Below are positions 1,334 through 60,031 of a DNA stretch of 60,031 nt, in pieces (the stretch's first letter is position 1; each line of letters starts with the position of its first letter). A program made the translations under genes and the position numbers. Source of the stretch: Octopus bimaculoides (Eukaryota). The DNA lies in NCBI RefSeq assembly GCF_001194135.2, contig NC_068984.1, forward strand, positions 74,993,051 to 75,053,081, in the 5' to 3' direction. The notes beneath the pieces are model-generated. The model had not been told where the DNA came from. It saw only the letters and a program-made list of their open reading frames with translations, and ran no database searches.

Positions 1334-2334
1334 CTTTAATAGATCATAAGAAAAAAAAAAATGATAATAAATGATTTCTTGTACTGCAAGAGGAGCAATG
1401 AACATAGAATTTACACTTTTGTATTGAGTATATAAATAAAGTGATATTAAATACAGGTCTCAATAAAAGGACATCTACTTAGAGCCATTACTTACAGGAA
1501 CCCCTTAACTAACTTGTATCACGGTCATAAATTTCGAGAAAAGATATGGTTAATTAAATTGACTCCAGTATTTGACTGGTGCTACAAGGAATGCAATCTG
1601 GTATACTTCAATTTCCCTCACTTCAATAAAAAGAACAAGAATGTTATTGCTACCAAGAATGTTATTACTATCATTATTATTCTTGACTTAGGCACCAGGT
1701 CACAAATTACAGAGGAAGAGATGTAGTTGATTATATCAACCGCATTAGTTTAGTTGTATTTATGTCATCAACCCCTGAAAGGAAAATAAATCCAAAGTTA
1801 ACTCTGGGAGGATTTGAACTCATAATGTAGCATTTTGTTCTTTGTCTGTTTGAATATTAATAATATTTATAATAAAGTTTTCTAAGTTAGGTACAATGCC
1901 ATAATATTAGAGTTCTGTACTATAATGATATTTGTTTATGTTGACCTTGGAGAAATGAAAGGCAAACAGAAATGTCAACACCTGTGAGATTTGAACTTGA
2001 AATCGAAACGTAAAAGGACATAACGGAATTACTACCAGGTATTCTTCTATTATAATGATCCTGAAACTTTCCTAGGAAGGAACATTTAAACAGAAACCAG
2101 AAAAAACATTGCAAATTTGAATTGTATGTTAAGTTGTGATAATTAAAATTGTCTACCCCATCTGAAATTTTAATGTTTTATGCTTTACACTTTCTGTTTA
2201 GATTATGGGAAGCAAAGTGAAGTTTGGAAATGATTTGGTTGCTGTTTCTAGTGAGATAGTAAGATAAGCAACTACATAGGGGCAGCCAAATAGATACAGG
2301 GAACCTATAACAACAGAAAACAAGAGTAATTTAC

Positions 2335-3223
2335 CTTTTGCTGGGTTGATATCTATTCCAGAACGATACAGATATTCCTCAGTCAGCCAGTCTTGATTCC
2401 TTAGAAATGTCCGTGCAGTGAAGGAAACTAAAATACAAATGACATTAACAACGATAGCTATCCGACACATCCGACTGGAATGGTAGTGAAAGTAGAGTTT
2501 TTCGGCACCTTTGGCAACCAACATGCAAAATCCCATGCTGGGTATATAGAGGACACGCTCTGCAATCACAAAGCCTACATAGAAAAATAGATTTGTGGCC
2601 GGTATAAATGGCACAATAATGACAGCTAATGAAAAAATAATGCAGTCTAATGAAGATCTATTGTCTTCGCCAGTTAATGTCATGTTTTGGTGGTTAGCAG
2701 ATTCTGCAAAATTTTTTAATCTTCCTCGGGTTCCATTCAGTACCCTTGGAGGATGATGGTGTGACTCTGTAGTACCATTTCTATGGATTTTTGTTAATTT
2801 TGAGCTGTGCGTAACATTGTGTGAATTGTGTTGTAAACTGTGTTGCATGACGTGCAATTCTGGTGTGACGTGGGTGCAGTGTGATATGTGTTTTAAAATA
2901 TAAATAGCAATGTACAAGAGCCCACAATAGAATGCTATGGTGACAATATTCCGTGAATCTCCCAAGCTCTCAACAAGCGGTATAGAGTTCATTGACCAAT
3001 CAAAGCTCAGAATGTAAGGACAAAGAAGCAGCCACAAGTTTAAAGTGAGCAGATAGTGGAATGTCAAAGTTCGTGTCAGGAAGCTTTTTGAGTCAGCTGC
3101 AGGATTGTCAGAAGGGGCAAATTCTGGGGGTTTGCTACCCATTAAACAAAATCGTAGAAATAGTAGACCAACTGAGCAGAAGAATAGCATTAAAAGACCT
3201 TCCCGGAGACGACTGTATTGCTT
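2335..3223 (-). CDS. TMTC2: TMTC2-like coding exon (probable exon 3; DUF1736 region and last TM helices)
   Basis: Translation KQYSRL...MGSKPPEFAPSDNPAADS...LLCPYILSFDWSM...PFIPATNLFFYVGFVIAERVLYIPSMGFC...RNQDWLTEEYLYRSGIDINPAK. Acceptor ctttgtttttcag|AAG (phase 0, matches the upstream donor); donor AAAG|gtaaat (GT at 2334-2333, phase 1). Confidence 0.95.
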
Positions 3224-3280
3224 CTGAAAAACAAAGGAGAAAATACATAAGAATGTTATACATGCACATACACATATATA

Positions 3281-4615
3281 CAGGAGTTGGACAAAATAAT
3301 GGAAACACTTAAAAATTTCAAACAAATTTGTTTTAATATGGGGTAGGACTGCCTTTGGCAGTAATTACAGCTTGAATTTACAAGGTATGGACTCAAAGTT
3401 TGAATTGTTTCCAAAGGTATTCTTATCCATTCTTCAGCTAAAACAAGTCTCCAGTTCTTGTAGTGATGATGGTAGAGGATATCAACTCCTTACTTGTTTT
3501 TCTAAAATGCACCATAAATGTTCAATAATATTAAGATCTGGGGACTGTGACGGCCAGATAAGATGTTCAGCTTCACTAGAATGTTCCTCGTGCCATTCAG
3601 TAACAACTTTAGCTGTGTGAATTGGTGCCTTATCATCCTGAAAGATTGTGTTTCCCTCTAGAAACAGTTCCACAAACATAGGATGAATTTGATCAGATAA
3701 AATGCTTAAATAGTCTTGACTATTAATTCTGCCATGAAGGGAAACCANNNNNNNNNNNNNNNNNNNNNNNNNNNNNNNNNNNNNNNNNNNNNNNNNNNNN
3801 NNNNNNNNNNNNNNNNNNNNNNNNNNNNNNNNNNNNNNNNNNNNNNNNNNNNNNNNNNNNNNNNNNNNNNNNNNNNNNNNNNNNNNNNNNNNNNNNNNNN
3901 NNNNNNNNNNNNNNNNNNNNNNNNNNNNNNNNNNNNNNNNNNNNNNNNNNNNNNNNNNNNNNNNNNNNNNNNNNNNNNNNNNNNNNNNNNNNNNNNNNNN
4001 NNNNNNNNNNNNNNNNNNNNNNNNNNNNNNNNNNNNNNNNNNNNNNNNNNNNNNNNNNNNNNNNNNNNNNNNNNNNNNNNNNNNNNNNNNNNNNNNNNNN
4101 NNNNNNNNNNNNNNNNNNNNNNNNNNNNNNNNNNNNNNNNNNNNNNNNNNNNNNNNNNNNNNNNNNNNNNNNNNNNNNNNNNNNNNNNNNNNNNNNNNNN
4201 NNNNNNNNNNNNNNNNNNNNNNNNNNNNNNNNNNNNNNNNNNNNNNNNNNNNNNNNNNNNNNNGTTTTGTTTCAGCAAGGAAGTTTTTCCCTCTTTCTCA
4301 AAGGTTGTCATTACTTTTGAGACAGTACCTCTTGATACACCAAACATTTCGGCTGTTTTCTTACGCTAGCGCCTGCCATACGAGCACCAACAATTTGACC
4401 TCTTTGAAAGTCCGATAGATCTGTAATTAATGGATTTTAATTACCTTTTTCAGATGATATCAGAAAAGAAACAGCAATTTTAGTAAAACATATTAAGCAA
4501 CACTAATAATAAATTAAAAAATATAAAAATAAACAAGTCTTTGATGGTTTTTATAGATGTTTCAAAATTATGATGGTATGATGCTAGGTGTTTCCATTAT
4601 TTTGGCCAACCCCCG
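3281..4615 (-). mobile_element. Tc1/mariner-superfamily DNA transposon with DD36E spacing, defective, central gap
   Basis: Left TIR CAGGAGTTGGACAAAATAATGGAAACAC; right TIR (rc) CGGGGGTTGGCCAAAATAATGGAAACAC. TA flanks both ends (3279-3280, 4616-4617). Transposase remnants lie inside. Confidence 0.92.
3333..4427 (-). pseudogene. Tc1-like transposase pseudogene
   Basis: N-terminus (I)[38 protein letters not shown] (HTH; start codon reads ATT). C-terminus IFQDDKAPIHTAK...WPSQSPDLNIIEHLW, followed by in-frame stops. The middle is hidden by N-run 3748-4263. Confidence 0.88.
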
Positions 4616-10530: not shown

Positions 10531-11725
10531 TAGTAGTAGTGGTAGTAGTAACAGCAGCAGCAAAAGCAGCAGCAAAAGCAGCAGCAATAGATGATAATGG
10601 TGTTTTGGTTAGGTAATGATGATGATGTATTAGTAAGTAATTGTAGTCTAATGAACATTTCAGTTCTATTTTTAAAAAAATTGAAATAAATAAATAAATA
10701 AATAAATAAATAAATGAATAAAAGAGGCTTAAGTGTCTTTTACTGTTCCAGTGCTGTAATTAGGTGATATTCTTGTATGCACTTACGTAGTCTGGGGTAA
10801 TTTTATAGACCACACATAAATATAAACTACACCAGCCATGCCAGGCAATGTGAGGTATGCCAAGACCATTGTCCAAAAACTAATAAACAGAACATGGCAG
10901 TCATAGGTCCGCTATTATTAGATTTGAACTCTTACTGTCTATGACAACCATAATAATAAATACCTCTGACATACAGGTAGATAGATATATATGTATGTAA
11001 GGTAGGTAGGTTCATAAGTATTGTAGGTTGTTAGGTAAATAGGTTGATAGGTAGAAAGGTGGATAGGTACAGTCAGGTCTCTCATGTAAATACCGCAATT
11101 GGATAAACTTTGATCAGCTGAGATTATTATCCCAGCAATTAGTATATAACAGCGTCCTTCTAGAGGTGTTTAATATCTAAAATAAATAAGGGAGATAATT
11201 TCAGCATGATCGGTTGATTAAATTTTGAGGCACTATAGACAATTGTTAATTGCCAACTGATGAACGCAATAGATGTGTTCCAGTCTTATTAAAACTCCTC
11301 CTCAAAGTGTGTATGTATGTAAGTACATATATAGTTTTATATTTATATGTGATGTGTAAAATTACTTGAGACTATATACACACGTGTGTGTACTTGGATG
11401 TGTGTGTTTGTATATGTGTTCATCCTCAACCACCACTTGACAACCAGTGTTGGTTTTTTTATGTCCTTGTAACTTGATTGTTCAGCAAAAGGGACCAATA
11501 GAATAACTGCCAAAATTTAAAATAGAATAAGCACTGCGGTCAATTTGTCCAACAAAACTTGTCAAGGTGGTGCACTAGCATGGCTGCAATCCTATGACTG
11601 AACCCAGCNNNNNNNNNNNNNNNNNNNNNNNNNNNNNNNNNNNNNNNNNNNNNNNNNNNNNNNNNNNNNNNNNNNNNNNNNNNNNNNNNNNNNNNNNNNN
11701 NNNNNNNNNNNNNNNNNNNNNNNNN

Positions 11726-17612: not shown

Positions 17613-17653
<41 letters not shown>

Positions 17654-17656
<3 letters not shown>

Positions 17657-17856
17657 TTTTATTTGTTTCAGTTGTTTGACTGTGGCCATGCTGGAACACC
17701 ACCATTAGTCAAACAAATCGATGCCACGACTTATTGTTTGTAAGCCTGGTATTCTATCAGTCGCTTTTCCCGAACTGCTAAGTTACAGAGATGCAAACAC
17801 ACCAACATCAATTGTCAAGTGATGTCTGGGGGACAAACACAGACATAAACACACAC

Positions 17857-17896
<40 letters not shown>

Positions 17897-18040
17897 CAAA
17901 TCTACCAGATCCACTCACAAGGCTTTGGTCAACCCAAGGCTATAGTAGAAGACACTTGCCCAAGGTGCCACACAGTGGAACTGAACCCAGAACCAAGTGA
18001 TTGCAAAGCAAGCTTCTTACCACACAGCCATGCCTGCACC
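17654..18040 (-). mobile_element. Near full-length CORE-like SINE with internal (CA)n tract
   Basis: Collinear with 35477-35848 from tail to tRNA-like head. Confidence 0.85.
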
Positions 18041-18057
18041 TATATTTATATATATAC

Positions 18058-22543: not shown

Positions 22544-22577
22544 TAAGTTTTATTATTCACACTGAAAATATACATAC

Positions 22578-23199
22578 CTGTTTAAAAATTTGAAAGAAAG
22601 CCTTTGGTGATATTTTCTGATGAACAAACACTTCGTAGATGATGCAGACACCTAGAACAGTAATCCCATGTTCTTTGGTCAACATGCTCAGTGTAGCTAA
22701 AACAGCAGACAAGAACAGATACAAAAGCCTCTTGCTGTGACGTGGGGTTGTTTCAGGGTTGCTAAATTCTTTAGGGTTTCCATCACAGTAGCCATCCCTG
22801 TAGTAAATATATTGACGGTAGCTAAGAAAGCTGAGTATGAAAAACAGACATGCCCCAACATCTGCTCGTCCTACAATGCCAGCAACAGCTTCAGTGTGAA
22901 CTGGGTGTGTAGCAAACAAGATTCCTGCAATGAGTGTTGGTAGAGTTCGGTGGAGGAAAACACTCGACATATGAGTGAAGCAAACTGTGACTAACGAGTG
23001 AAGTAAAACATTGGTAAAATGGTAGCTCCAAGGGTTCAGTTTACTGAAGAAATGATTCAGGCGGAACGAGAGCACACATATTGGTCTGTATGACTTATGC
23101 GAACCACTGTTGACCAATGGTGTCCCCCAGAAATCATCATAGAAAATGTTCTGGATTGGTGTCTCAGGAAGGAGGTCTGGGTTCTTCTGAACAGCTCGA
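22578..23199 (-). CDS. TMTC2: TMTC2-like protein O-mannosyltransferase, internal coding exon (probable exon 2; N-terminal GT-C transmembrane region)
   Basis: Translation (S)RAVQKNPDLLPETPIQNIFYDDFWGTPLVNSGSHKSYRPICVLSFRLNH...HPVHTEAVAGIVGRADVGACLFF...KEHGITVLGV closely matches TMTC2 as recalled. Acceptor ttgtttcacag|T (AG at 23201-23200, phase 2); donor CAG|gtatgt (GT at 22577-22576, phase 0). Confidence 0.95.
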
Positions 23200-23673
23200 C
23201 TGTGAAACAAAAAAAAACAAAGCAGAAATTAGAAAATACTGTATTTACATGTTTGATGCTAGAAATTTAATGCAAATGTCAAGGTCAAAATTGTTGGGCA
23301 ACTTGATAATCAAGTGTAAAACAAAAGCAAGAGAATATAATACATTACTGATTTTTAGGTACAAAAGAATGGATGTCACATTATATATCGTACTCAAGTC
23401 ATCATCATCATCATTTAACATCCATTTTCCATGCTAGCTTGGACTGGACGGTTCGACTGAAAACTGGTAAGGTGGGGAGCTACATCAGGTTCCAATCTGA
23501 TTTTGCATGGTCTCTACAGCTGGATGCCCTTCCTAATGCCAACCACTCCAAGTGTGTAATGGGTGCTTTTTACATGCCACTGGCATGGGTGCCACTTATG
23601 AAACATCAACATGAGCCATGGCTACAATCTCACCTGGCTCAATCCACAGTAATTAATATCTAGAGGTTGTATA

Positions 23674-44122: not shown

Positions 44123-44990
44123 TACGAAGTACGTTCAAAAAGTATCCGACTCTATTTTTTCCCGCCAAAATTAATGTCGTGTGGGTAAAATGCTTTCGGT
44201 GCGAATGCGTGAAACTTTTTGCGCTGATAAATTGCGTCAGCTCTCGGCTGTTACGCCTACAGTACAGACATCTAGTGCACGCTCATCGGGTTTTCGTTTT
44301 CACGCAAGATGACCGAACGCATCGAGTAGATTATAAGTTCATATCTCACTACCAGTGACGATGGTCTTCGTAAAATTTGGGTCGTTGTTTGCACAGTCCC
44401 GCGTGTCCTGATCGATTTCCATGCAGAATTGCTTCTGCTGCTCCTTGGCAACGAATTTCTCCTATACTCTCCACATGCACAAATCCTCTGTTAAAATGGA
44501 ATGCACTGATCCTGTACTTCTTCCCACTTCGTGAGCAATTTCCTGGATTGTTACACGATGGTCTTCCATGACTATTCGCCGAACCTTCTCAATCGACACC
44601 TCGTTTCGGCTTGAGGATGACCTGCCTGAACATGCCTCGCTCTCCACTGAAGTACGGCCATGTTTGAAGCGGTTGTACCACCCCTTGATCTGAGTTTTGC
44701 CCTTGGCATCATTACCAAAGGCCTGCTGAACCTACTGGATGGTTTCAGCTTGAGTATCACCAAGTTTTTGCTAAAACTTGATTCAATATCTCTGTTCGAT
44801 GCGTTCGGTGCAAACGAAAATCTGACGAGTGTGCACAGCACGTCTGTACTCTAGAAGTAACAGCCAGGAACTGACGCGGCCTCCCGGCGCAAACATTTTC
44901 CCACGCGCGCAGGAAGAGCATTTTTTCCCACGCGGAATTATTCTTGGCGGGAAAAAATTATATCGGTTATTTTTTTCCCCTAAGATGATA
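44123..44990 (-). mobile_element. Fold-back mariner derivative with two 5' ends and a truncated transposase
   Basis: Inverted arms of about 200 bp (44123-44325 vs 44796-44990). The minus strand encodes TERIEQRY*IKF*QKLGDTQAETIQ*VQQAFG...WYNRFKHGRTSVESE...SGR...VRRIVMEDHRVTIQEIAHEVG...TIVTGSE, a mariner HTH region that ends at a mutated first catalytic D. Confidence 0.88.
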
Positions 44991-45449
44991 GGGTGTGGGT
45001 TGAGAGATATCGCTGTTATTTTTAGGATGTCGACAGACCATGCAGAGGCACTCTCAGGACAGCAGGTGGTGGAGGGCTTCAAGATTTTCGGCATTTTGTT
45101 CCCTTAGCCATATATCTATACATTTTACAGCTGTCATTTTGTAATCCATCCTGCCAGTCTGCTCACACTTTAAATTGAAACTTAACACAACAGCTTTCCA
45201 TCTCGGAACACGAAAGTTAGGGTGTTGCGCGGAAATAACATACATTCTCTTCCCATCCAAGATACAGTATACTATTGTGTATCTCCTGTACTTTATACTT
45301 GTCAGTATGTATGTGTGGTGATTAATTTATATGTGTTTTTGTTCGCTTCCCAATCATGTTCGATATCCTCGCGAAGAATTTCTCTCACCACTAGCTTCTC
45401 AGGTCTACACAAGATTTGTGGACAAAATGAGGTTGATGTTCCAGCCAAG

Positions 45450-46385: not shown

Positions 46386-46947
46386 GAAACAAAGCACAGT
46401 ATTTCAACAGAAACATGCTTAATAAAAGGTCATAGCTAGGTATCTGGGGGTAATGAGAGCTAAGATCACCACAAGTCACTCACTCTATATCACTGTTTCC
46501 GTTTTTTAAAAGAACTGAGGCCCAAATATATTCTTCAAGTGTTGTCTATGACATAGAATGACATAGAGGAATATCTGCTGAGTTTCGTGGCATACACTGT
46601 GGAAAACACACTGATTTGGAATTGGCTGTAATTAATTTCTTCAAAATATCAAAAATTTAAAACTAAAAACGGTTGTGCTTTTCTCATAATCGGCATGCAA
46701 CACTACGTTCAATGAAGGAATTCATAATAAGACCAGAGAGTGTGTGCGTCAAAAAGAACAGATCCGATTACCGAATATGTCCTCATTCAACCCCCTCCTT
46801 TTCTAAAACAGGCAAAATACACCGCGCAGGACTTTCTGATTAACCTTTTTTTTTTTTCTTTTTCAGCTGAGCGGTCTGCTTGATAATGAACCAGGTGTCA
46901 TGCGGGCAGTTTTTCGAAAAAGGTTGCCCGTGCTTTGCAGTAAGATG

Positions 46948-47664
46948 GGATCTAGTTCAAAACGGGGGCGCCAGTATTTTCTTAACGAAACACTTTGAAA
47001 CTTGGGACACTGGTAGAATGTGTCATATAAAACATCTTTTTCTCTTAGTCTTCTTAAGAAAAATTATTATATTGCAACTTATTTCATGTTAAAGTTGTCG
47101 TNNNNNNNNNNNNNNNNNNNNNNNNNNNNNNNNNNNNNNNNNNNNNNNNNNNNNNNNNNNNNNNNNNNNNNNNNNNNNNNNNNNNNNNNNNNNNNNNNNN
47201 NNNNNNNNNNNNNNNNNNNNNNNNNNNNNNNNNNNNNNNNNNNNNNNNNNNNNNNNNNNNNNNNNNNNNNNNNNNNNNNNNNNNNNNNNNNNNAGGGTTA
47301 GGGCAAATGTTGTACACATACAGTTCAGGCAGATGTTAACGAAATTATATTAAAAATAAAACGAAGGAAAACGAACACACGTGCGTTGCCTTTCTGCAAA
47401 ATGTCAGAAGTAATGGAGATTAAATACGCTTTACACCGCTTAAACTGCCAAAGGAGTAATTGTAAACAGCTGAATACTTGTCAGTGATTGGTTGAAATTA
47501 TCGAAATAAGACAATTTTTTACATGAAATAACTTCGAATACAAAATTTTTTTTCTGTTCTATAACACAAAATAGATAAGTATACGAAGTTTGAAAGTCTT
47601 TCGGTACCAAAAACACTACATAAAACATAAATGAAAACTGGTGCCCCCGTTTTGAACTAGATCC
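46948..47664. mobile_element. Non-autonomous DNA transposon, GGATC termini, 28-bp TIR, 8-bp TSD (Merlin-like candidate), copy A
   Basis: TIR GGATCTAGTTCAAAACGGGGGC(G/A)CCAGT (27/28 identical). TSD GTAAGATG at 46940-46947 and 47665-47672. Confidence 0.9.
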
Positions 47665-48073
47665 GTAAGATGTGATCTGAAGGAAATTTATTCCTATTTC
47701 TAGCAGGTTGAATCACTTCGTAGAGGTTTTTCTGCATTTACTACAGCAGCAGCAGCAGTAGCAGTAATAGTAGTAGTAGTCGTAGTAGTTGTTGTTGTTG
47801 TTGTGACTAACACATTTCCCGATATTTTTTTTTTCCCACTGAATCACAATGTACAACCATGTTGCCTGTATTCAGTTTCTGTGGTCCAAATTTCATTCAG
47901 CATTAGAAGTGAAAGAGGTACATACAACCAAAGAATAAATTAAAAAAATTAATCATACTCAGCCAATAAGATTGATTTATATTTCAGAATAAGCAAAGCT
48001 TTTTGTGTCACACAATTGTAACACCTTTTATTGTGGAGAAAAGCTAAATAACAATACACTGAACGGAACAGAC

Positions 48074-48078
<5 letters not shown>

Positions 48079-48133
<55 letters not shown>
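48079..48133. repeat. (ATT)n microsatellite
   Basis: Directly visible. Confidence 0.92.
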
Positions 48134-48134
<1 letters not shown>

Positions 48135-48384
48135 TACCACCCCAATTTACCCTTTACCATATTCCCCTTATAGGTTACTCACGTGCGCTATTGTTATTTA
48201 GCTTCCGGTCAACCTTAATCGAACATGACAATGGTAAAAGCATGCGCTCCATTTATTTATATATTTATTTATTTATTACCCAAACAGTGTATGTAGGAGT
48301 ACCATTTACTTTTTTTATGAAGTCGGTTGAGTAATTAATAAATAAATAGTAAATAAATATAAATATTCGATGGGGTGATCAGTT

Positions 48385-48542
48385 AATTACGATTTTATAT
48401 AACATATTCCCCTCTCAGATTCACACACTTATTGCAGCGGTCCTACCGTTTTTCTAATCCCTGTAAAGAACTCAGAAGTTTGGGCCTCCAGCCAGGCCTT
48501 TCCCGTCACCCTTAAAGACCGGAACTTTTCAGCACGCCCTCG
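48385..48542. mobile_element. Second, truncated copy of the same mariner-type MITE
   Basis: aacatattcccctctcagattcacacactta(t/c)tgcag is shared with 16657-16693. Ends accggaacttttcagcacgccctcg|ta. Confidence 0.78.
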
Positions 48543-48645
48543 TATATAGGTTGTTGGAACAAACAGGATAAATAGAATTCAGTACATGATCATACAAAAT
48601 TTTTTAGCATATTTAAAAGGTAGTAATTGCAAAGTAACTCCAAAG

Positions 48646-48691
48646 GCATGGTATTTTTTATCGAAACGCGTTTCGATGAAAAATACCATGC
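48646..48691. repeat. 46-bp near-perfect palindrome
   Basis: GCATGGTATTTTTTATCGAAACG|CGTTTCGATGAAAAATACCATGC; one mismatch, no spacer. Confidence 0.92.
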
Positions 48692-48709
48692 ATAAAACTT
48701 TCTGCCCTT

Positions 48710-48745
<36 letters not shown>

Positions 48746-49107
48746 CATATACATACACACGTCATACAGCAAGTAACTTCGAAAGTATACTTTTGTCACT
48801 ATTTGTAACATCAGAGAATATGGCATACATACAATAATTATAATTTAACTTTTATCGAATTTCTGGGTGCTTATAGAAATTGATGAAATGAATACTATTT
48901 TCAAACAGAAAAATTACCTAAAAATAATATAAAAATGAAATATATTTTTCATTTATTAATTTGCAATAAATTATTATTATTATTCTAAGATTTCAGACAT
49001 AATCAGTGTACTTCAGCAAAACTTATCTCCGCAAAATTTCATTAAAAAATATTTAGGCAGTGGGGTATGAACCTTGAATTATGCCCCTTCTCTCTCCATA
49101 CATGCAT

Positions 49108-49208
49108 AGTGTGTGTGTGTGTGTGTGTGTGTGCGTGCGTGTGCGTGCGTGTGCGTGTGTGCGCGTGTGCGTGCGTGTGCGTGTGTGCGCGTGTGTGTGC
49201 GTGCGCGT
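49108..49208. repeat. Mixed (GT)n/(GC)n alternating purine-pyrimidine tract
   Basis: Directly visible. Confidence 0.9.
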
Positions 49209-51927
49209 GATGTAAATTTACGGATACGGGATAAAGCCGACGATGTGTATATGTATAATTTGCAGACAACTCATTCCGAAACGCAAACAAATATTTTATT
49301 TGAAGGTTTACAAAGAGAATTTCAAAAGCGTTCCTTTATTCATTGCCAAGCACCAAGCCTTGTATGAGAACTCATTCTCTATACCTCTCATGTGAACGCT
49401 TGCTGTATCTCTTTTTTAAGGGGTAAAGCGTGACTGAAGTACTCAGCCAACCAACATTTATATCGGCTATTATTGTCTGAGTGTGTGAGTGTTGTGTGCG
49501 TGAGTGTGTGTGTGCGTGAGTGTGTGCGTACGTGTGTGTATGTGTGTGTGTGGTTACACTGAAACTTTGTAATGTACAGCCAGCCAATGTACTGTAAGTT
49601 CTTAATAAATGAGAGTATACAAATGCAAAACATGTTTTCTTAATACTTGAAATCAAAGTTTCACCTATAGAATTCCTTGTCAAGAGAAAATAGAAACTGA
49701 ATTTAGCTTTGGTTGCTACTTCTCTCTTAATGTTTGTCTGTTTGCTTGCCAGTCTCTTTCTCTCTGTGTGAATATATATGTGTGTGTGTGCGCGTGTGTG
49801 TCTACTTGTCACTGTATAACTAATTGTAACACACACACACACACACACACACACCAGATTATATATATATATATATATATATATATNNNNNNNNNNNNNN
49901 NNNNNNNNNNNNNNNNNNNNNNNNNNNNNNNNNNNNNNNNNNNNNNNNNNNNNNNNNNNNNNNNNNNNNNNNNNNNNNNNNNNNNNNNNNNNNNNNNNNN
50001 NNNNNNNNNNNNNNNNNNNNNNNNNNNNNNNNNNNNNNNNNNNNNNNNNNNNNNNNNNNNNNNNNNNNNNNNNNNNNNNNNNNNNNNNNNNNNNNNNNNN
50101 NNNNNNNNNNNNNNNNNNNNNNNNNNNNNNNNNNNNNNNNNNNNNNNNNNNNNNNNNNNNNNNNNNNNNNNNNNNNNNNNNNNNNNNNNNNNNNNNNNNN
50201 NNNNNNNNNNNNNNNNNNNNNNNNNNNNNNNNNNNNNNNNNNNNNNNNNNNNNNNNNNNNNNNNNNNNNNNNNNNNNNNNNNNNNNNNNNNNNNNNNNNN
50301 NNNNNNNNNNNNNNNNNNNNNNNNNNNNNNNNNNNNNNNNNNNNNNNNNNNNNNNNNNNNNNNNNNNNNNNNNNNNNNNNNNNNNNNNNNNNNNNNNNNN
50401 NNNNNNNNNNNNNNNNNNNNNNNNNNNNNNNNNNNNNNNNNNNNNNNNNNNNNNNNNNNNNNNNNNNNNNNNNNNNNNNNNNNNNNNNNNNNNNNNNNNN
50501 NNNNNNNNNNNNNNNNNNNNNNNNNNNNNNNNNNNNNNNNNNNNNNNNNNNNNNNNNNNNNNNNNNNNNNNNNNNNNNNNNNNNNNNNNNNNNNNNNNNN
50601 NNNNNNNNNNNNNNNNNNNNNNNNNNNNNNNNNNNNNNNNNNNNNNNNNNNNNNNNNNNNNNNNNNATATATATATATATATATATACACGAATACAGAT
50701 ACATATATATGATAGCACAATGACAGGACGTCTTCAACAATATGTCAACCGGATATGGCAGTCCTCGAAACAACAACACAAATGCACTGCGAGCAACCAA
50801 CTAACTTATAGAAATAGCAAACGAAACTCCATTAAGATGACATAATGTAGCCCTAAAAACATTATTATTACAATTCAACTCAATGGTCTCTTTGCGAAAT
50901 AACTTATCATACACACACACATACATGCAAATACACACACACAAACACATATATACAGAAGGTTGTTTGATAGGGCCAGTCAGAGTGACCATTGGTTTGG
51001 CACCTATAAAGCGCTTAGGTGTGTAGTTGACTTGTCAGATTCAAATGGTCGCGGGCACATACGCTCTCTACAACTTGAGGTAGGAAAACGTCATGGGAAG
51101 TTCATTTTGTAAACAAAATATTCGAATATGTGTGTATACAAATACATATATATATATATATATAGATATATATATATATAAAATAACTGGATAGAAACTT
51201 GGTTGATGAAATAACGGGTTTATCCATGTTTAGATTTAGTCATTTTCGTTAATTGTCGTACAGGATCTTTCATCATTATTTTGTTATTACATATAACATG
51301 TCAAGTCATTTTTGTAGAGAAAGTTCTTGAGTCTTGAGATTATCCCCCTCCCCCTCTTCTCATTTGGAGTTGGTCCTAATTACCATTTAAGCGACTGTTC
51401 AATCTTTTCTGGAAGCAGAGATAGTTTTGATAAATCAAGAATCTATAATCTTATATGATATTTAATATATCTTTATTTGACTTAATATGAATGTGTACAC
51501 ACATACATACAATCAGATGCAGACGTTCAACGTTTATTCTTTCAGCATTATAGTATATCTCCTGTGGCCAATGTTGTCAAACTAGATTATAAAGAATTGT
51601 TACGGCGATGTTTTATGAAAGGAATCAATGACCTGACGTTTAAAAGACACGAAAATGGTATTGACAAAATCATGTTAGATACAGGTTTTACAAGTCAGCA
51701 GATTCTTTGGTTTATTGAGTGACTATAAATTAACAAAGGTTTCTTTTTTCTTTCTTCTTTCGACGACACAAACTTTTTACAACAAATGTTAAATAGAGAG
51801 CTCAGATTTCTTACGTAAATAGATTTTTCTTTATTTACTGTCTTAAACATAAAACAGATATAGTGATTCACTTACACACACACTCTCTCTCTCTTTCTCT
51901 CTAATATACACATTATATACATATAGA

Positions 51928-51958
<31 letters not shown>

Positions 51959-52512
51959 CGTACGTACCCACTGACACACGTTCATGTGTTCAAGAGAAAG
52001 GGGCACTCAATACATAACCCAGAGTCTATTGAGTCATAGTTGGTGATTCACTCCGTTGATGTATAAAGACATATCAGTACAGTATTTGTGTAATCAATCA
52101 GGCAAGAGTGTTACCCAGTATGTGTATGTGTGCCAAAGAGGGAGATGGGTAGAAAGAGAGACATCACGTATAAAGTAATACATATAAAACGTATCAAAAT
52201 ATATTATATACGTTATTATGCACACATACACATGCATTTACAAACACATACATATAACCAAAAAGGAACAGGAGAGTGTTCATAAATCATTCAGATACAT
52301 CATCTTATACAATAGATGTCAGTTATATATATTAAGAAAACGTTGTAAGCAAATTATCTTGCCAAATACTCAGAGATCGTTTAACTTTCATTAGTAATCT
52401 TTGGGATATCTACCGGACTACAGACTGCGTTACACACAGAGTTTCAAGTTTAACAGTTAGAAATATGCGTGGAGGAGAAGCTGGGGATATATATTACTTA
52501 TACACATGTCAA

Positions 52513-52780
52513 AATGAGGGGCTATGCTGGAAAACTAGTTGCAATAGCGTGTCCCTTGAAAGAAAAGGTTGATGAATCAGATGTTATGGCCTTGCACATA
52601 GAATGGCTCGGGGAAGGATGCCAAAGATAACATTGACATACACTCCACTAAGAAAGCGAAAGCCTGGACAGCCTCAGAACACCTGAATGCGAACAGAGAA
52701 GAATAGATTGCACATGGCGCAAGTTAAAGCAATTTACTGACGATCGATGTGGATGGCACCAAATCGTCGAATCCTTATTT
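52513..52780 (+). mobile_element. RTE-like LINE, degenerate 3' end of ORF2
   Basis: GRMPKITLTYTPLRKRKPGQPQNT*MRTEK...(frameshift)DRCGWHQIVESL resembles the post-RT C-terminus of RTE-clade LINEs (R.PK.AL.WTP.GKR.RGRP..TW...DR..W...V). Confidence 0.6.
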
Positions 52781-54164
52781 CCCGATTTGGAAAAAGGGGA
52801 TTAAATTATAATTTATAGTTTAAGCACATTGTTACCATTTTTTATTGGAGTGGTTGGTCGATGAAATCGATCCTTGTACTTAGACAGACTTACTTCGGTG
52901 CAGGTTTTGAAAACAGAGCTTTGGAAGTAAAAAAAGTAGTACAACAAAGCATTGTATCCGAGGGCCTGCCGATTCTGGTAGTCTACTATCTTAGAGGATT
53001 AAATAATAAATACTGACAATAATGACTAGTATTGGATGAGAAAAGAGCTCACTGTGCGTGCGCGAGCGTTTATACGCGCATGCGTACATAAGCACAGGCG
53101 CAAAAATACGTCCAAAAACATGCTTATACGTATTGTACACACACACACACACACACGCACACACACACACACACACACACACGGAGGAATGCAGACATAC
53201 AAACATCGACAAACATCAAAATTAATGGCCTACTGAATGTTAACAGCTTCTTACATTTCTCGGTAGAACGCTTGCTATGTGTGATCAGAGACAAATTTAT
53301 AGCGTTTTGTTGGTATGGGCTTTTTTTTCAGCTGTCACTTAAAGGCGTAATAAAGAATAAGCAAATGTTGCGATCTGCAGTGAAGAGGGCAACATGTGAG
53401 TTAGTCCTGAAGGTAAAAGTAAATGGGTCCTCCGTCACCTTCACGGTGAGTATTGGCAGTTGTTGATCGTTTAATGTAACTACTTATTTAATCATTATAG
53501 TGTGAAAAATAATGAGTTTTCATTTCACAATAGCTGTACCCTTAACATATTTCTTAACCAGTACCAAAACGACACAATAAGTAACGAGACATACAAAATT
53601 GGTCAAGCGATATGTGCAACAGAGAGTGTTTTCATCGCTTGGTCAGTCTGTAACGCAGAATGTTTTCATCATTTGGCCAATCTTTGCCGCCCCAATCTGA
53701 AATATATGTGAAGAACTAGTTAATAAGAAACTCGGATAAAATGTCTTGTGGTATTTATTCCTTCCGTCAGTCTATGCTCCGAGTTCAAATCCTGACAAGG
53801 CCAACTGTACTTTTCATCCTTTTTCGATCGATAAATGAGATACTATCCATGGCGCTGAATTACTGTAATTCTTAAAAGCCTCAGAACGGACGCCTAGTGG
53901 TATCTGTTCCAGCTTTACTAAAGCGTCCTACTTTCAAAATGCGTTGCTTGGCATTTAAATAGCACCATCACCAACTAAGCAGGCGTAGCCTGAAGTGTAA
54001 GGCAAATTTTCAAAACAATGCCAACACCAAAATATATCGCCCAGGGCGGAGTTGAGTTCTTAGTGATGGGAATATAAACAAACCAATACTAGTGAGGGAA
54101 ACAAATACAGCCATAAAGACACACACAGGTGTGTATGTATGTATGTATGTATGTATGTGTGTAT

Positions 54165-54268
54165 TCTTTTCTTTTACTTGTTTTAGTCATCTGACTTCGG
54201 CCATGCTGGAGCACCGCCTTTAGTCGAGCAAATCGATCCCAGGACTTATTCTTTGTAAGCCTAGTACT
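54165..54268 (-). mobile_element. CORE-like SINE 3' tail fragment
   Basis: cttttacttgttttagtcat...gccatgctggagcaccgcctttagtcgagcaaatcgat...ctttgtaagcctagtact is nearly identical to 35480-35580. Confidence 0.85.
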
Positions 54269-55398
54269 ATTGATCATTCTAAAGACTATTGGGTTTTACT
54301 CATAAGGTATTGAAATCTTATATGTATACCATTCTGCCTAAATAATGGATTTACAAATACAATATCTCTGCATTTTCGTTCCTCCAATTCATTCTCTATA
54401 TCGTATCTTATCTAAATTAACTATTGCTTAACTATCCTCTCACACCGTCTCTAATGAAGAGATATAGTAAAAATCCTGGAAACAGCTGTAAGACCTATTT
54501 ATAAATGTTCTAAAATCTACACAGCCATGGTTTTTTATCTCATTACGAAAAGTAAATCTTTATATACACACGCTGATATATGACCTACGTTGGACCCCTT
54601 ATTTGCATAATCCCCTAACCTGGAGCTTAACAAAATTTTGGTCGGTCCAGGACTGTAGTAGAAGACACTTGCCCAATGTGCGACGCTATGAGACCGAACC
54701 TGAAACCATGTTATAACAAATTTAGTTTCTTAACCACACCACCAGTTTTTCTTTGCCACTTTTTTCTTTTATATTCAAAAGATAAATAGTGGAGTAAGAT
54801 ATTTTTAATGAATGAAATTTGGTTGTTATTTCTGGCACGTTATACACCCAGGTAGAGGCTTCATTCACTAGTTTTAGCATAAAATTTTTGTTTTTGTTGT
54901 TGATTTTTTTTTTTTAAGCTTTTAAACTCATTAAATCCATCGAAGTCCCTCGTGTTTTACCTTCAAGCTTCAATTGCTGCTGATAGATAGAAAGAAAGCG
55001 TTAAGAACAAACAGCATGACTAACAACAATCGTGGGGTCTTACGGATGGTATCAACGAATAACAAACAACAACAACAACAATAATAATAATAATAATAAT
55101 AATATGGTTGGATGGGTGTGAATAAAGATAGTGGATATGATATGAATTTGCTGAGTCAAAAACCATGTCTAGCTTGAAGGAACGCCAACAACATATTAAT
55201 AACTTATTCCATTTGTCATGGCATTAATCACATCGATACTACGACCAATTGAATAGAGTGGCCTGCATAGCAATGGTAATGGCTTAGAGTGTATAGAAAT
55301 GTGACACAAACATTTTCATACAAGAGCATCCACACACATGTATACACTATACGCATATATACACACATACACACACAAACCTAAATCCACTACTACAT

Positions 55399-55447
<49 letters not shown>

Positions 55448-55994
55448 NNNNNNNNNNNNNNNNNNNNNNNNNNNNNNNNNNNNNNNNNNNNNNNNNNNNN
55501 NNNNNNNNNNNNNNNNNNNNNNNNNNNNNNNNNNNNNNNNNNNNNNNNNNNNNNNNNNNNNNNNNNNNNNNNNNNNNNNNNNNNNNNNNNNNNNNNNNNN
55601 NNNNNNNNNNNNNNNNNNNNNNNNNNNNNNNNNNNNNNNNNNNNNNNNNNNNNNNNNNNNNNNNNNNNNNNNNNNNNNNNNNNNNNNNNNNNNNNNNNNN
55701 NNNNNNNNNNNNNNNNNNNNNNNNNNNNNNNNNNNNNNNNNNNNNNNNNNNNNNNNNNNNNNNNNNNNNNNNNNNNNNNNNNNNNNNNNNNNNNNNNNNN
55801 NNNNNNNNNNNNNNNNNNNNNNNNNNNNNNNNNNNNNNNNNNNNNNNNNNNNNNNNNNNNNNNNNNNNNNNNNNNNNNNNNNNNNNNNNNNNNNNNNNNN
55901 NNNNNNNNNNNNNNNNNNNNNNNNNNNNNNNNNNNNNNNNNNNNNNNNNNNNNNNNNNNNNNNNNNNNNNNNNNNNNNNNNNNNNNNNNNNNNN

Positions 55995-56146
55995 GTATAC
56001 GGAACCCCTTAATTTTGGTGGCTTAAAATTTGGAGAAAAAAAGGTTTTGTAAGGGATTATAATACTATCCATGTATAAGAAACTCCCATATTTTTTTAAC
56101 ATAACTTTTGGCAAAAAAAGGATTCCTTATACACGTTAAAATACGG
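55995..56146. mobile_element. CCGTATTT-ended (Tc2/Kanga-like) MITE, right part
   Basis: Ends ttccttatacacgttaaaatacgg|ta. Same family as 8384-8454. Confidence 0.65.
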
Positions 56147-56160
56147 TATATATGCATATT

Positions 56161-56210
<50 letters not shown>

Positions 56211-56522
56211 CTTATGCATGCATAAACTCAAATGTATGTACGTAAAAGAATACGTTTGCGCATTGAAAGACGGACAATTACTCTAATATAAGAATTAATG
56301 TGGTATAGTATGCGTTAGATATTCACAAATCGTTACCCAGAGAGTTCCACGTTTCGAATGTATGTGTGTGTGTGAAATCATAGATACGCACATTGTATAG
56401 ATATATGGTGAGGAAAACAACTTGCTTCCCAAACACTATGTCTTGGGTTCGACCTCATTACTCTTCACTTTAGACAAGTTAATGTGTGTAGCCTCAAGGT
56501 AATAAAATATTGTGAACGGAAA

Positions 56523-56745
56523 GGCGTGAGCTGGCACAATCATTAGTACGCCGGGTGAAATGCTTTGCGGTGTTTCGTCTGCCGTTACGTTCCGAGTTCA
56601 AATTCCAGCGAGGTTGACTTTGCCTTTCATCCTTTCGGGGTCGATTAAGTATGTACCAGTTACGCACTGGTAATCGACTTAATCTCTTTGTCCTTGTTTG
56701 TCCCTTCTGTGTTTAGCCTCCGGTGGGAAATAAGGAAATAAAAAG
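56523..56745 (+). mobile_element. Meta-like SINE, near full length
   Basis: tRNA-like head ggcgtgagctggcac...gagttcaaattcc; central gactttgcctttcatcctttcggggtcgat..tgtaccag; tail ttgtccttgtttgtccc...gtgggaaataaggaaata. Confidence 0.85.
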
Positions 56746-57066
56746 ATAATGAATGGAATTTGCTTGACCGAAAATACAGAAGTGTGTGTGCGTTTTCATG
56801 AGAGAAAGAGCGGCAGAAAGAAAGAAAGAAAGAAAGAAGAGGAGAAATGGAGGGAGACTCCGTGTGTGTGTGTGGTCGAATTTTTGTCTCTTTACGTCAA
56901 ATGGAAATTGAGCTATTCAATAAACAGAGGTCGTCGAAATAGTGCCAGAGTGGAAGTACTGAGGTTGATATAACTAACTTAAAATCCGTGAAGGTGGTGC
57001 TATACATCATAGTGGCAGTCTCATGATTAAACTTCTTAATAAAACAAAATGTTCCCAACCGAAGTC

Positions 57067-57854
57067 GGATCTTTGGGGTTTGACGGGCAACATTTTTTTA
57101 TGTAGTGTTTTTGGTACCGAAACACTTTCAAACTTCGTATACTTGTATATTTTGTGGTATAGAACAGATAAAAATGTTTGTATTCGAAGTTATTTCACGT
57201 TAAAAATTGTCTTATTTCGATAATTTCAACTAATCACTGATGTCTNNNNNNNNNNNNNNNNNNNNNNNNNNNNNNNNNNNNNNNNNNNNNNNNNNNNNNN
57301 NNNNNNNNNNNNNNNNNNNNNNNNNNNNNNNNNNNNNNNNNNNNNNNNNNNNNNNNNNNNNNNNNNNNNNNNNNNNNNNNNNNNNNNNNNNNNNNNNNNN
57401 NNNNNNNNNNNNNNNNNNNNNNNNNNNNNNNNNNNNNNNNNNNNNNNNNNNNNNNNNNNNNNNNNNNNNNNNNNNNNNNNNNNNNNNNNNNNNNNNNNNN
57501 NNNNNNNNNNNNNNNNNNNNNNNNNNNNNNNNNNNNNNNNNNNNNNNNNNNNNNNNNNNNNNNNNNNNNNNNNNNNNNNNNNNNNNNNNNNNNNNNNNNN
57601 NNNNNNNNNNNNNNNNNNNNNNNNNNNNNNNNNNNNNNNNNNNNNCACTGACTGTATTCAGCTGAATAGACGTCAGTGATTGGTTGAAATTACAAAAATA
57701 CGACAACTTTAACATGAAATAACTTGCGATGTACACTTTTTTGTTAAGAAGGCTAAGAGAAAAAGTTGTTTTGTATGACACATTCTACCAGTGTCCCAAG
57801 TTTGAAAGTGTTTCGTTAAGAAAACAAGTGTTGCCCGTCAAATCACAAAGATCC
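57067..57854. mobile_element. Non-autonomous DNA transposon, GGATC termini, 28-bp TIR, 8-bp TSD (Merlin-like candidate), copy B
   Basis: TIR GGATCTTTG(G/T)G(G/A)TTTGACGGGCAACA(T/C)T (25/28). TSD CCGAAGTC at 57059-57066 and 57855-57862. The internal arms are homologous to copy A in reverse orientation. Confidence 0.9.
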
Positions 57855-60031
57855 CCGAAGTCAACTTTGCCTTTTATTATTTTGGAGGTCGAGTATGGAT
57901 AATATAAAGTATGTGTCAATGAATGGTGTCAATTTACATTACTATAAGGTATACTAGTTGCGTGTGGAATTATAACAGTAAATCAACTTTTACGTGTATT
58001 TACGTGTATTTTATCGTTCTTTAGTCGCTCGTCTGCCAAAAAACAATTAAGAACAATTCCATCTATTTTAAGATGGTAGAAAGTGATTTGAAGTTATTTG
58101 GTTACCTTTCCAAAAGGTGAAACAAACAGAAGTACCCCCGCTGGCATCGTTCCTCTCAGTACTAACAGAGTATATGTCGAAAATATGGAGTTTGTGAAGA
58201 TAGAAATAGTGTAAACAAGTTTTAGAATAAAAAAAAATATTTAGTGGCAGAGAAAAAAAGTAGGCAGGTAGGTGTATAATGAAAGAATCTGGGTGGTAGA
58301 AAGAACACAGCTCTCAGTGTGTAGGTGTATAAAACCAGTTTAAAGGGTAAACTCTTTCAGACTATTTATCCATCCATCACTTTTCATTGACTCTATCTTA
58401 TTCTTTTACACACACAATCTATCTATTTATCAATCGATTACGATATTCATTTGTCAACCTTCATATATAGTTAAGTGTATCGTAATTACAATTGTGACAT
58501 GGAGCAATGGACAATCTTTATGTAAGTATTGCCATGTAAAATACAATGCAAGAACGAAAAGTCTGTCAATTTTAGTTTATCATCAGATTTGTTTAGTACA
58601 AGGTTATATGTATGGCTGTAAATACATGAATAAATATATATATACATGTGTATGTATATTCATGTATGTATGTGTGTGACAACGAAGAAACTGACATAGG
58701 CTTTTAAAACAGATAAATCTAGTATTCAAAACATTAACTAAAGAAAAATTTCTTTATATATTATGATAGGTTTTAATTCAAATGTAAACACTTTAACCCG
58801 AGTGTGTATTGTAGGTCAATGTTTTTTAACCTACAAAATCATTCCAGTTGTGACCATCCAGTCTTTTAGGTGTATCTAGGACAGTTGTTTCCTAATTATT
58901 TTTGCTGAACACTGACCTGATATACTTGAATACATAATACCGACCCCAACTTTTACTCAATAGTTGTGCAATAGCGCCGGTGATTAAAAATATACTGCTA
59001 TTCACCGATACATTCATAGCTGCTAATCATCTCATAAGAGGCGTTATAGAACTCTCCCCTAAGAACTAGTGCTCCAGGACAATACTGCCCAACGTATCCT
59101 TCTTTATTTTAAAAAATATAGTGTAATTTGAATGAATTTGGTTGTCGGTTATAGTATGTCAAACAACGTCGGAGAGACTCTTCTTTTTCAAGGAGCCAGA
59201 GGCGGTTTTCTTGAGAAAGGCATGAACGTCAATCAGTCTCGTGTTTCTCTAAAACTTTTTTTTCTCGCAGGTTGAACGCCAGACACAAAATGATCCCCCA
59301 GTGCCTTGTTATTGCCACTGTCGTTTAGCCGTAAATCAAATTTGATCGAGCAAACCTATGATTATAGGCGGCATTCTTTACTTGATAAACTGAAAGTGTG
59401 GAATTTTAGGACGGATTTGGTTGTTATTTCTAGAAGAAAGAGTGATCACATACGTAAAGGGCCCCCTCCTCGCTGACTCCACGGACTGATTGAAGGCTGT
59501 CAGTTGAGATACACGTTTTAACACTTGATGATATCAAATCATATATTTACATGAGTTACTTTCCATATCACCCAAAGAACCGACCAACCGACCAACCAAG
59601 TAAACCACCAGCCTGTTTAGTCTGCCTTCTTTCAATGTTCATTAAATCAAAAACTGTATTCTCTCGTCTCCAATGTAACTTGTATGTGTGTGTGTGCGCG
59701 CGCGCTTGAATATTTATTGGTTTATTAATATATTTCGTATATTTATGTATTTCTTTAACTATACGTGTTATACACACACATACACACACTAATGTTTTTT
59801 TTTTCCTGGCTAAATTGTTCCATTCCACTTCGCAATTTTTTACCAACGCCCACCATTAATACTAACTCTGTCTTGGACTTACTCTTTCTCTCATTCCGTT
59901 TCGTGTGTATGTGTGCGTCGCGCGCGCGTGCGTGCGTGCGTGCGTGCGTGTGTGTGTTAAAAAGTTTTTGGACTTTGTTGCCGTGCTAGAAACAGATCTT
60001 ATCCTATTTAGATCATTCATACCTCCCCAAG

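Follow-up and report, generated by a model that had tools for sequence, protein, structure and literature searches.

MITEs (miniature inverted-repeat transposable elements) are normally classified, and paired with a transposase, by their terminal inverted repeats (TIRs). The DNA transposons of the Merlin superfamily and the MITEs that go with them were reportedly described by Feschotte in 2004. Merlin elements are defined by a terminal GG, a target-site duplication (TSD) of 8–9 bp and TIRs of 24–462 bp, and 191 Merlin protein hits have been counted in Octopus bimaculoides (PMC8101967). Among other MITEs, the piggyBac CMITEs of the coral Acropora combine a conserved internal sequence with TIRs that differ across families (Wang et al. 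2010, PMC2872659). Here, we analyze two MITE copies, A and B, in a 60,031-nucleotide stretch of O. bimaculoides DNA (contig NC_068984.1, positions 74,993,051–75,053,081 of the forward strand; hereafter the window, to which coordinates without a locus name refer). With moderate confidence, we read the two copies as subfamilies of one hairpin MITE family of ~710 bp, probably belonging to Merlin, whose ends are exchangeable or fast-evolving.

Set beside these systems, the octopus MITE resembles Merlin in its 8-bp TSDs, in TIRs that open with 5'-GG and in its long, imperfect inverted arms (PMC8101967), and one MITE end is joined to the sequence of a DDE_Tnp_IS1595-encoding element on another O. 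bimaculoides contig. It differs in its termini, to which those of the closest transposase relatives in O. sinensis bear no relation. The likeness to the coral CMITEs lies in an identity between types that is higher in the arms (90–93%) than in the TIRs (50%). The CMITEs are, however, piggyBac elements of ~100 bp with TTAA TSDs, conserved over their whole 75-bp interior (PMC2872659), whereas the octopus MITEs are hairpins of ~710 bp with 8-bp TSDs, in which the arms are conserved and the centre is not. Foldback-like and long-TIR elements such as Galileo (PMC3573991) have similarly long, internally structured inverted arms; Galileo belongs to the P superfamily, differs in TSD length and has autonomous copies. 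The octopus pattern has a published precedent and is an uncommon feature rather than a new kind of element. The first-pass annotation of the window had proposed an undescribed mechanism, a suggestion weakened by the publication of different TIRs on conserved interiors in the coral CMITEs (PMC2872659).

Copy A, a non-coding TIR element, occupies positions 46948–47664 and is interrupted by 192 N. Its TSD, GTAAGATG, lies at 46940–46947, and the exact 8-mer recurs at 47665–47672, so that both copies of it abut the TIRs. The left TIR, GGATCTAGTTCAAAACGGGGGCGCCAGT (46948–46975, plus strand), represents type A and matches the reverse complement of the right TIR (47637–47664, minus strand; GGATCTAGTTCAAAACGGGGGCACCAGT when read inward) at 27 of 28 positions. 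Inside the left TIR follows arm 2 (46977–47101, plus strand; element positions 30–154), which the assembly gap cuts at 47102; the gap (47102–47293) conceals the inner portion of this arm together with part of the centre. The readable centre (47294–47480, plus strand) opens with the telomere-like AGGGTTAGGG at 47294–47303 and gives way to arm 1, the right arm (47481–47633, plus strand), which is common to the B-type copies and carries the CCAAT-like sequence GTGATTGGTTG. Some likeness to the B-type arm is present ahead of 47481, with BLAST matches starting at about position 164–168 of the readable centre.

Copy B (57067–57854) is likewise a non-coding TIR element; it lies inverted relative to copy A and is interrupted by 400 N. 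The TSD CCGAAGTC is found at 57059–57066 and, as an identical 8-mer, at 57855–57862. The left TIR, GGATCTTTGGGGTTTGACGGGCAACATT (57067–57094, plus strand), represents type B and agrees at all 28 positions with the TIR of B2, an ungapped copy described below; the right TIR (57827–57854, minus strand), also of type B, departs from the B2 consensus by three substitutions private to it. When the two ends of copy B, GGATCTTTGGGGTTTGACGGGCAACA and GGATCTTTGTGATTTGACGGGCAACA, are compared with each other, 24 of 26 positions match. Arm 1 stands on the left here (57096–57240, plus strand) and is homologous to the right arm of copy A in opposite orientation, while arm 2 stands on the right (57646–57824, plus strand, its inner part 57646–57699 included) and is homologous to the left arm of copy A, again in opposite orientation. 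The gap between them (57246–57645) conceals the centre. For both copies, the perfect 8-bp TSDs and self-matching TIRs reported by the first-pass annotation were verified. The type-A TIR pattern has two matches in the whole window and the matches to the type-B patterns are confined to copy B, with none expected by chance in either case. Sequence comparison of the window revealed no copies besides A and B, and a generic scan for TIRs with TSDs over the window and the octopus loci returned no GG-type MITEs outside the A/B family.

The copy B2 is located on the O. bimaculoides contig LGKD02092233.1 (L003), which was reached by a search for relatives of an O. bimaculoides Merlin transposase fragment taken from the supplement of PMC8101967. 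It spans 710 bp (L003 5575–6284), has the TSD TAACGTTG and a perfect 29-bp TIR, and belongs to type B. The left half of copy B, TIR included (57067–57245), is 92.8% identical to L003 5575–5753 over 180 bp, and the opposite part with the right TIR (57651–57854) is 96.1% identical to L003 6081–6284 over 204 bp. The two flanks of each internal gap belong to one element, as TIR and TSD pairs agree across the gap. From the length of B2, the missing sequence is predicted at ~185 bp in copy A, where 192 N are written, and at ~322 bp in copy B, where 400 N are written. The ungapped B2 aligns collinearly with both window copies and shows their sizes to be as expected, so an origin of these copies as assembly-gap artefacts was rejected. 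Two further gaps (49887–50666 and 55448–55994) sit between copies A and B and touch neither of them.

The complete copy B2 adopts a single long hairpin fold (−168.6 kcal/mol, z = −23.5), and its centre contains degenerate, telomere-like TTAGGG repeats in palindromic order (L003 5895–6025). The hairpin fold and the palindromic centre plausibly account for the breaks in the assembly inside the window copies. The sequence GTGATTGGTTG, which resembles a CCAAT box on the opposite strand, occurs at 47484–47494, at 57676–57686 and, in reverse, at 57227–57237. Since every arm carries it, a full element would hold two inverted CCAAT-like motifs.

The comparison of the two types reveals that they share their arms far more closely than their ends. 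The left arm of copy A is 90.4% identical to the reverse complement of 57700–57824 over 125 bp, aligning likewise to L003 6130–6254, and the right arm is 93.1% identical to the reverse complement of 57096–57240 over 145 bp, which bears out the cross-matching of arms in opposite orientation that the first-pass annotation had noticed. Its observation that the TIRs of A and B agree little also holds: of the terminal 28 bp, 14 are identical, namely GGATCT, GGGC and a few scattered bases. Between A and B, mismatches thus amount to 14/28 in the TIR against 13/142 and 12/125 in the arms (Fisher p = 2e-6 to 2e-8). Between B and B2, the corresponding counts are 0/28 and 3/30 in the TIRs and 11/142 and 4/125 in the arms, a difference that is not significant. 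A third end variant, A', found on L003, differs from A at 6/28 plus 3/17 positions of the terminal 45 bp and at 0/53 positions of the arm (Fisher p = 0.001). The terminal module is therefore far more divergent between types than the adjacent arms, and this result is statistically robust.

When all ends are aligned inward, GGATCT is invariant and positions 7–28 are specific to the type; ~10 nt present in the A and A' ends are missing from B. Inside a T-run, the identity among all copies is 90% or more, and the shared sequence opens at T-runs on both sides. The arm sequence common to A and B reaches ~155–185 bp from the ends. The centre is a different matter: local alignment of 47294–47458 (165 bases of the centre of copy A) with the centre of B2 gave a score of 28, compared with 28.7 ± 4.8 for shuffled sequences. 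As the readable centre of A is no closer to the B-type centre than shuffles, only the arms are counted as shared. Of the one internal body that the first-pass annotation had assigned to both elements, the arms stand and the readable centre does not, so that "shared arms" replaces "one shared body". TTAGGG-like repeats are nevertheless present in both A-type and B-type centres. The arms themselves carry a subfamily signal too, because 17 arm positions (7 in arm 1 and 10 in arm 2) are the same in B and B2 but different in A; as A is represented by one copy, some of these differences may be peculiar to it. A small inversion linking the TIR cores (GTTCAAAAC versus GTTTGAC) was also considered and set aside as probable chance.

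Several properties are common to the family as a whole. Exact 8-bp TSDs flank all three full copies, the chance of such a duplication abutting a TIR being ~1.5e-5 for each. All ends begin with 5'-GGATCT, and the TIRs of 28–29 bp continue as imperfect arms of ~200 bp; the two arms of one element form imperfect inverted repeats with 65–69% identity over ~200 bp, as the first-pass annotation had described. No coding capacity was detected in the MITE, the open reading frames (ORFs) being at most 66 aa long and free of Pfam matches, and a phmmer search of the encoded peptides returned no match among 1.8 billion representative proteins. Copies A and B are mobile, non-coding TIR elements, real and not artefactual. 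Two other origins were discarded: an RNA-gene or short interspersed nuclear element (SINE) origin of the arms, as the Rfam search of the MITE gave no family above threshold, and a nested insertion of one MITE in another, as the module borders lack a second set of TIRs or TSDs.

Three full copies and one end fragment, 90–96% identical, were found in 68 kb of O. bimaculoides-like DNA, a density of ~1 copy per 20 kb. The loci from O. sinensis and O. vulgaris (L005–L009, ~95 kb) contain no full copy. This fits an amplification mainly after the split of these Octopus species, dated to 13–33 million years (PMC13282606), the sample being small. A 20-nt arm probe had no match in viral contigs, and its matches in metagenome contigs were limited to two chance 20-mers; the TIR and arm strings did not occur in the papers searched. 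The remaining loci retrieved from ENA (L004 and L010–L013) derive from unrelated organisms.

The link to Merlin comes from the same contig as B2. The gene P0124 (L003 3223–4056) encodes a DDE_Tnp_IS1595 domain (PF12762; 62.7 bits versus a cut-off of 27), and ~450 bp past its stop, at L003 4505–4602, lie the outer 98 bp of MITE arm 1, TIR included. This stretch is 91% identical to the outer 98 bp of arm 1 in copy A, with 53 of 53 subterminal bases matching, and ends in ...GGCCCCCGTTTTAAAAAAGATCC, the variant A'. The A' TIR is identical to A at 22 of 28 positions (79%) and to B at 17 of 28 (61%); the differences between A and A' are scattered substitutions between conserved blocks, with no indels. 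The preceding 37 bp (L003 4468–4504) are homologous to a subterminal inverted repeat of related O. sinensis elements (alignment score of 50 versus 22.9 ± 3.4 for shuffles, with a run of 21/21 matches within). A chimeric junction at L003 4504/4505 thus joins Merlin subterminal sequence to a MITE end, oriented as expected for a right end and lying roughly as far from the motif as the different terminus of the O. sinensis relatives. Those relatives, at L008 and L009 (82% and 72% protein identity), end in the unrelated sequence GGGTAC...GGTCCCGGTGCGCGCAC.

No left end was detectable for the L003 transposase copy, which is a single copy. In the window, tblastn with the Merlin transposases from the supplement of PMC8101967 found no Merlin remnants. 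The first-pass annotation had supposed that a non-autonomous element switched its transposase partner; in the DNA sampled, neither A-type nor B-type TIRs were found at both ends of an intact autonomous element, and what it did yield is one degenerate Merlin-linked locus. Two side observations concern the O. sinensis Merlin loci. A 110-bp MITE fragment comprising inner arm and centre (L009 6934–7045, 85% identical) lies ~50 bp beyond a Merlin element's right end and is a second MITE piece adjoining a Merlin of the P0124 family. In L008, an insertion of ~470 bp (10779–11250) splits the P0124-related Merlin gene; it is bounded by perfect 44-bp inverted repeats with CGATTTCC motifs, and similar repeats flank the Merlin genes in L005–L007.

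Structurally, the MITE has 8-bp TSDs in three of three full copies, 5'-GG ends and a TIR length within the range of 24–462 bp. Elements of the hAT superfamily end in 5'-YARNG and those of the P superfamily in CA. The TSD length would fit hAT, but the MITE ends are GGATC and not YARNG. The remark of the first-pass annotation that GG ends and 8–9-bp TSDs suit Merlin agrees with the published definition (PMC8101967). Merlin is the most likely superfamily for the MITE, a tentative link to a transposase being drawn from the one degenerate locus on L003. The junction at this locus is suggestive in two respects: the MITE ends would belong among the Merlins, and end modules would have been exchanged in this lineage.

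To explain these observations, we propose that each element is built of a terminal module of 28–45 bp, a subterminal arm of ~150 bp and a variable centre with telomere-like repeats. The terminal 28–45 bp would be the presumed transposase-recognition site, and the arms would represent inheritance from a common ancestor. Three or more variants of the terminal module occur (A, A' and B), yet the two ends of each full element carry the same one. Amplification is presumably restricted to copies with both ends suited to a single transposase; this requirement for matching ends would explain why left and right ends are alike within an element and why the classes look discrete. As to how the ends change, the most likely route appears to be template switching, through which co-resident Merlin families would exchange modules. 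Repair of the gap left by an excision would proceed by copying, with a template switch at the T-runs just inside the TIR, and a few founder copies with exchanged ends would then be amplified. We favour exchange because the borders at the T-runs are sharp, because a 10-nt indel separates A from B and because of the junction on L003.

A number of points weigh against two subfamilies with exchangeable ends. The discreteness of the TIR types rests on three full copies and one end fragment, and the DNA sampled contained no intact autonomous partner. The L003 transposase copy may be a rearranged relic to which the A' end lies adjacent by accident, since the MITE is dense at ~1 copy per 20 kb, and the closest O. 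sinensis relatives of this transposase carry unrelated ends. The intermediate position of A' between A and B suits gradual divergence equally well. Finally, the centre is not common to A and B, so the two could have arisen separately, by deletion within two related autonomous elements. The question raised with the first-pass annotation, whether TIR variation is a continuum that tracks the divergence of the body, receives a divided answer: the divergence of the TIRs exceeds that of the arms, but the arm substitutions track TIR type and A' is intermediate. This combination leans towards ordinary subfamilies, possibly a series of variants.

The alternative that survives best is a stepwise co-evolution of TIRs and transposase, in which the ends were altered base by base along with diverging Merlin transposases and without recombination, each round amplifying the rare copies whose ends better fit the new transposase. 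We regard it as possible but less likely than not; as an account of end change it ranks nearly as good as exchange, because A' is intermediate (22/28 to A and 17/28 to B) and differs from A by scattered substitutions without indels. The arm substitutions that follow TIR type are in line with it, as is a host with many Merlin lineages (PMC8101967), whose proteins are 37–92% identical to one another. By our own estimate, single-step selection among thousands of copies would cost little arm divergence. The difficulty is that ~14 matched changes would be needed at each end, while the arms differ by only ~6–9%. The change from A to B is moreover sharp at the inner TIR edge and includes a 10-nt indel, and the L003 junction indicates that joins between end modules without homology to each other do occur in this lineage.

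An independent miniaturisation, in which A and B arose as separate internal-deletion derivatives of two related autonomous Merlins with already differing TIRs and similar subterminal arms, we consider doubtful. It would account for a readable A centre unrelated to the B-type centre, MITEs typically have only subterminal regions in common with their parents, and the outer 98 bp of arm 1 do occur beside a Merlin transposase gene on L003. The arm sequence shared by A and B, however, runs to ~155–185 bp, well past the 98 bp at this locus, and TTAGGG-like repeats are found in both centres. The half-identical TIRs beside arms of ~91–93% identity would merely be shifted onto the parents, and no such parent elements were found in the DNA sampled. 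That the MITE instead falls into one of the other superfamilies known for 8-bp TSDs (hAT, P, MULE, Zisupton or Novosib), which would make the L003 adjacency a coincidence, is very unlikely: the lack of an intact autonomous partner in our sample, the unrelated ends of the O. sinensis relatives and a fragment density sufficient for chance adjacency speak for it, but the 5'-GG ends misfit the termini of hAT and P, all three TSDs are exactly 8 bp, and the A' end begins exactly where Merlin subterminal homology stops, in right-end orientation.

The window contains several other features. Two long open exons on the minus strand (22557–23210 and 2198–3325) belong to a TMTC2-like O-mannosyltransferase gene; their best database matches are 56–61% identical, with molluscs among the named ones, and no Octopus protein was returned. 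Remnants of Tc1/mariner-type transposase frames are located at ~3300–4350, where a gap (3748–4263) splits the frame, and at ~44500–45100. Between 30210 and 30900, ~50 copies of the 14-bp purine-rich unit GAGGAAGAGGAAGG form an array; the long ORFs that it creates are artificial and abound in Glu, Gly, Arg and Lys. SINE-like repeats at 35471–35845 and 17652–18041 are 78–93% identical to copies in the O. sinensis locus L008, and relatives of these repeats recur across the window. Taken with the B2 copy, the shared repeats assign the window to an Octopus genome.

Together, our results leave the catalogue of mobile-element kinds unchanged. Their practical consequence concerns classification, as TIR-based pipelines would split a family with arms of ~91–93% identity and ends that are half different into unrelated families. 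The octopus MITE family offers a system for studying how non-autonomous elements track or switch their autonomous partners, and octopus genomes are unusually rich in Merlin transposases, so that partner tracking is open to study there. It is unlikely, on the present evidence, that the hairpin chassis was repeatedly given new ends and that module exchange by template switching is a regular process in MITEs, perhaps also in autonomous Merlins. If exchange of ends does take place, it would allow MITEs to change or escape their transposase partner and so to outlive any single transposase lineage.

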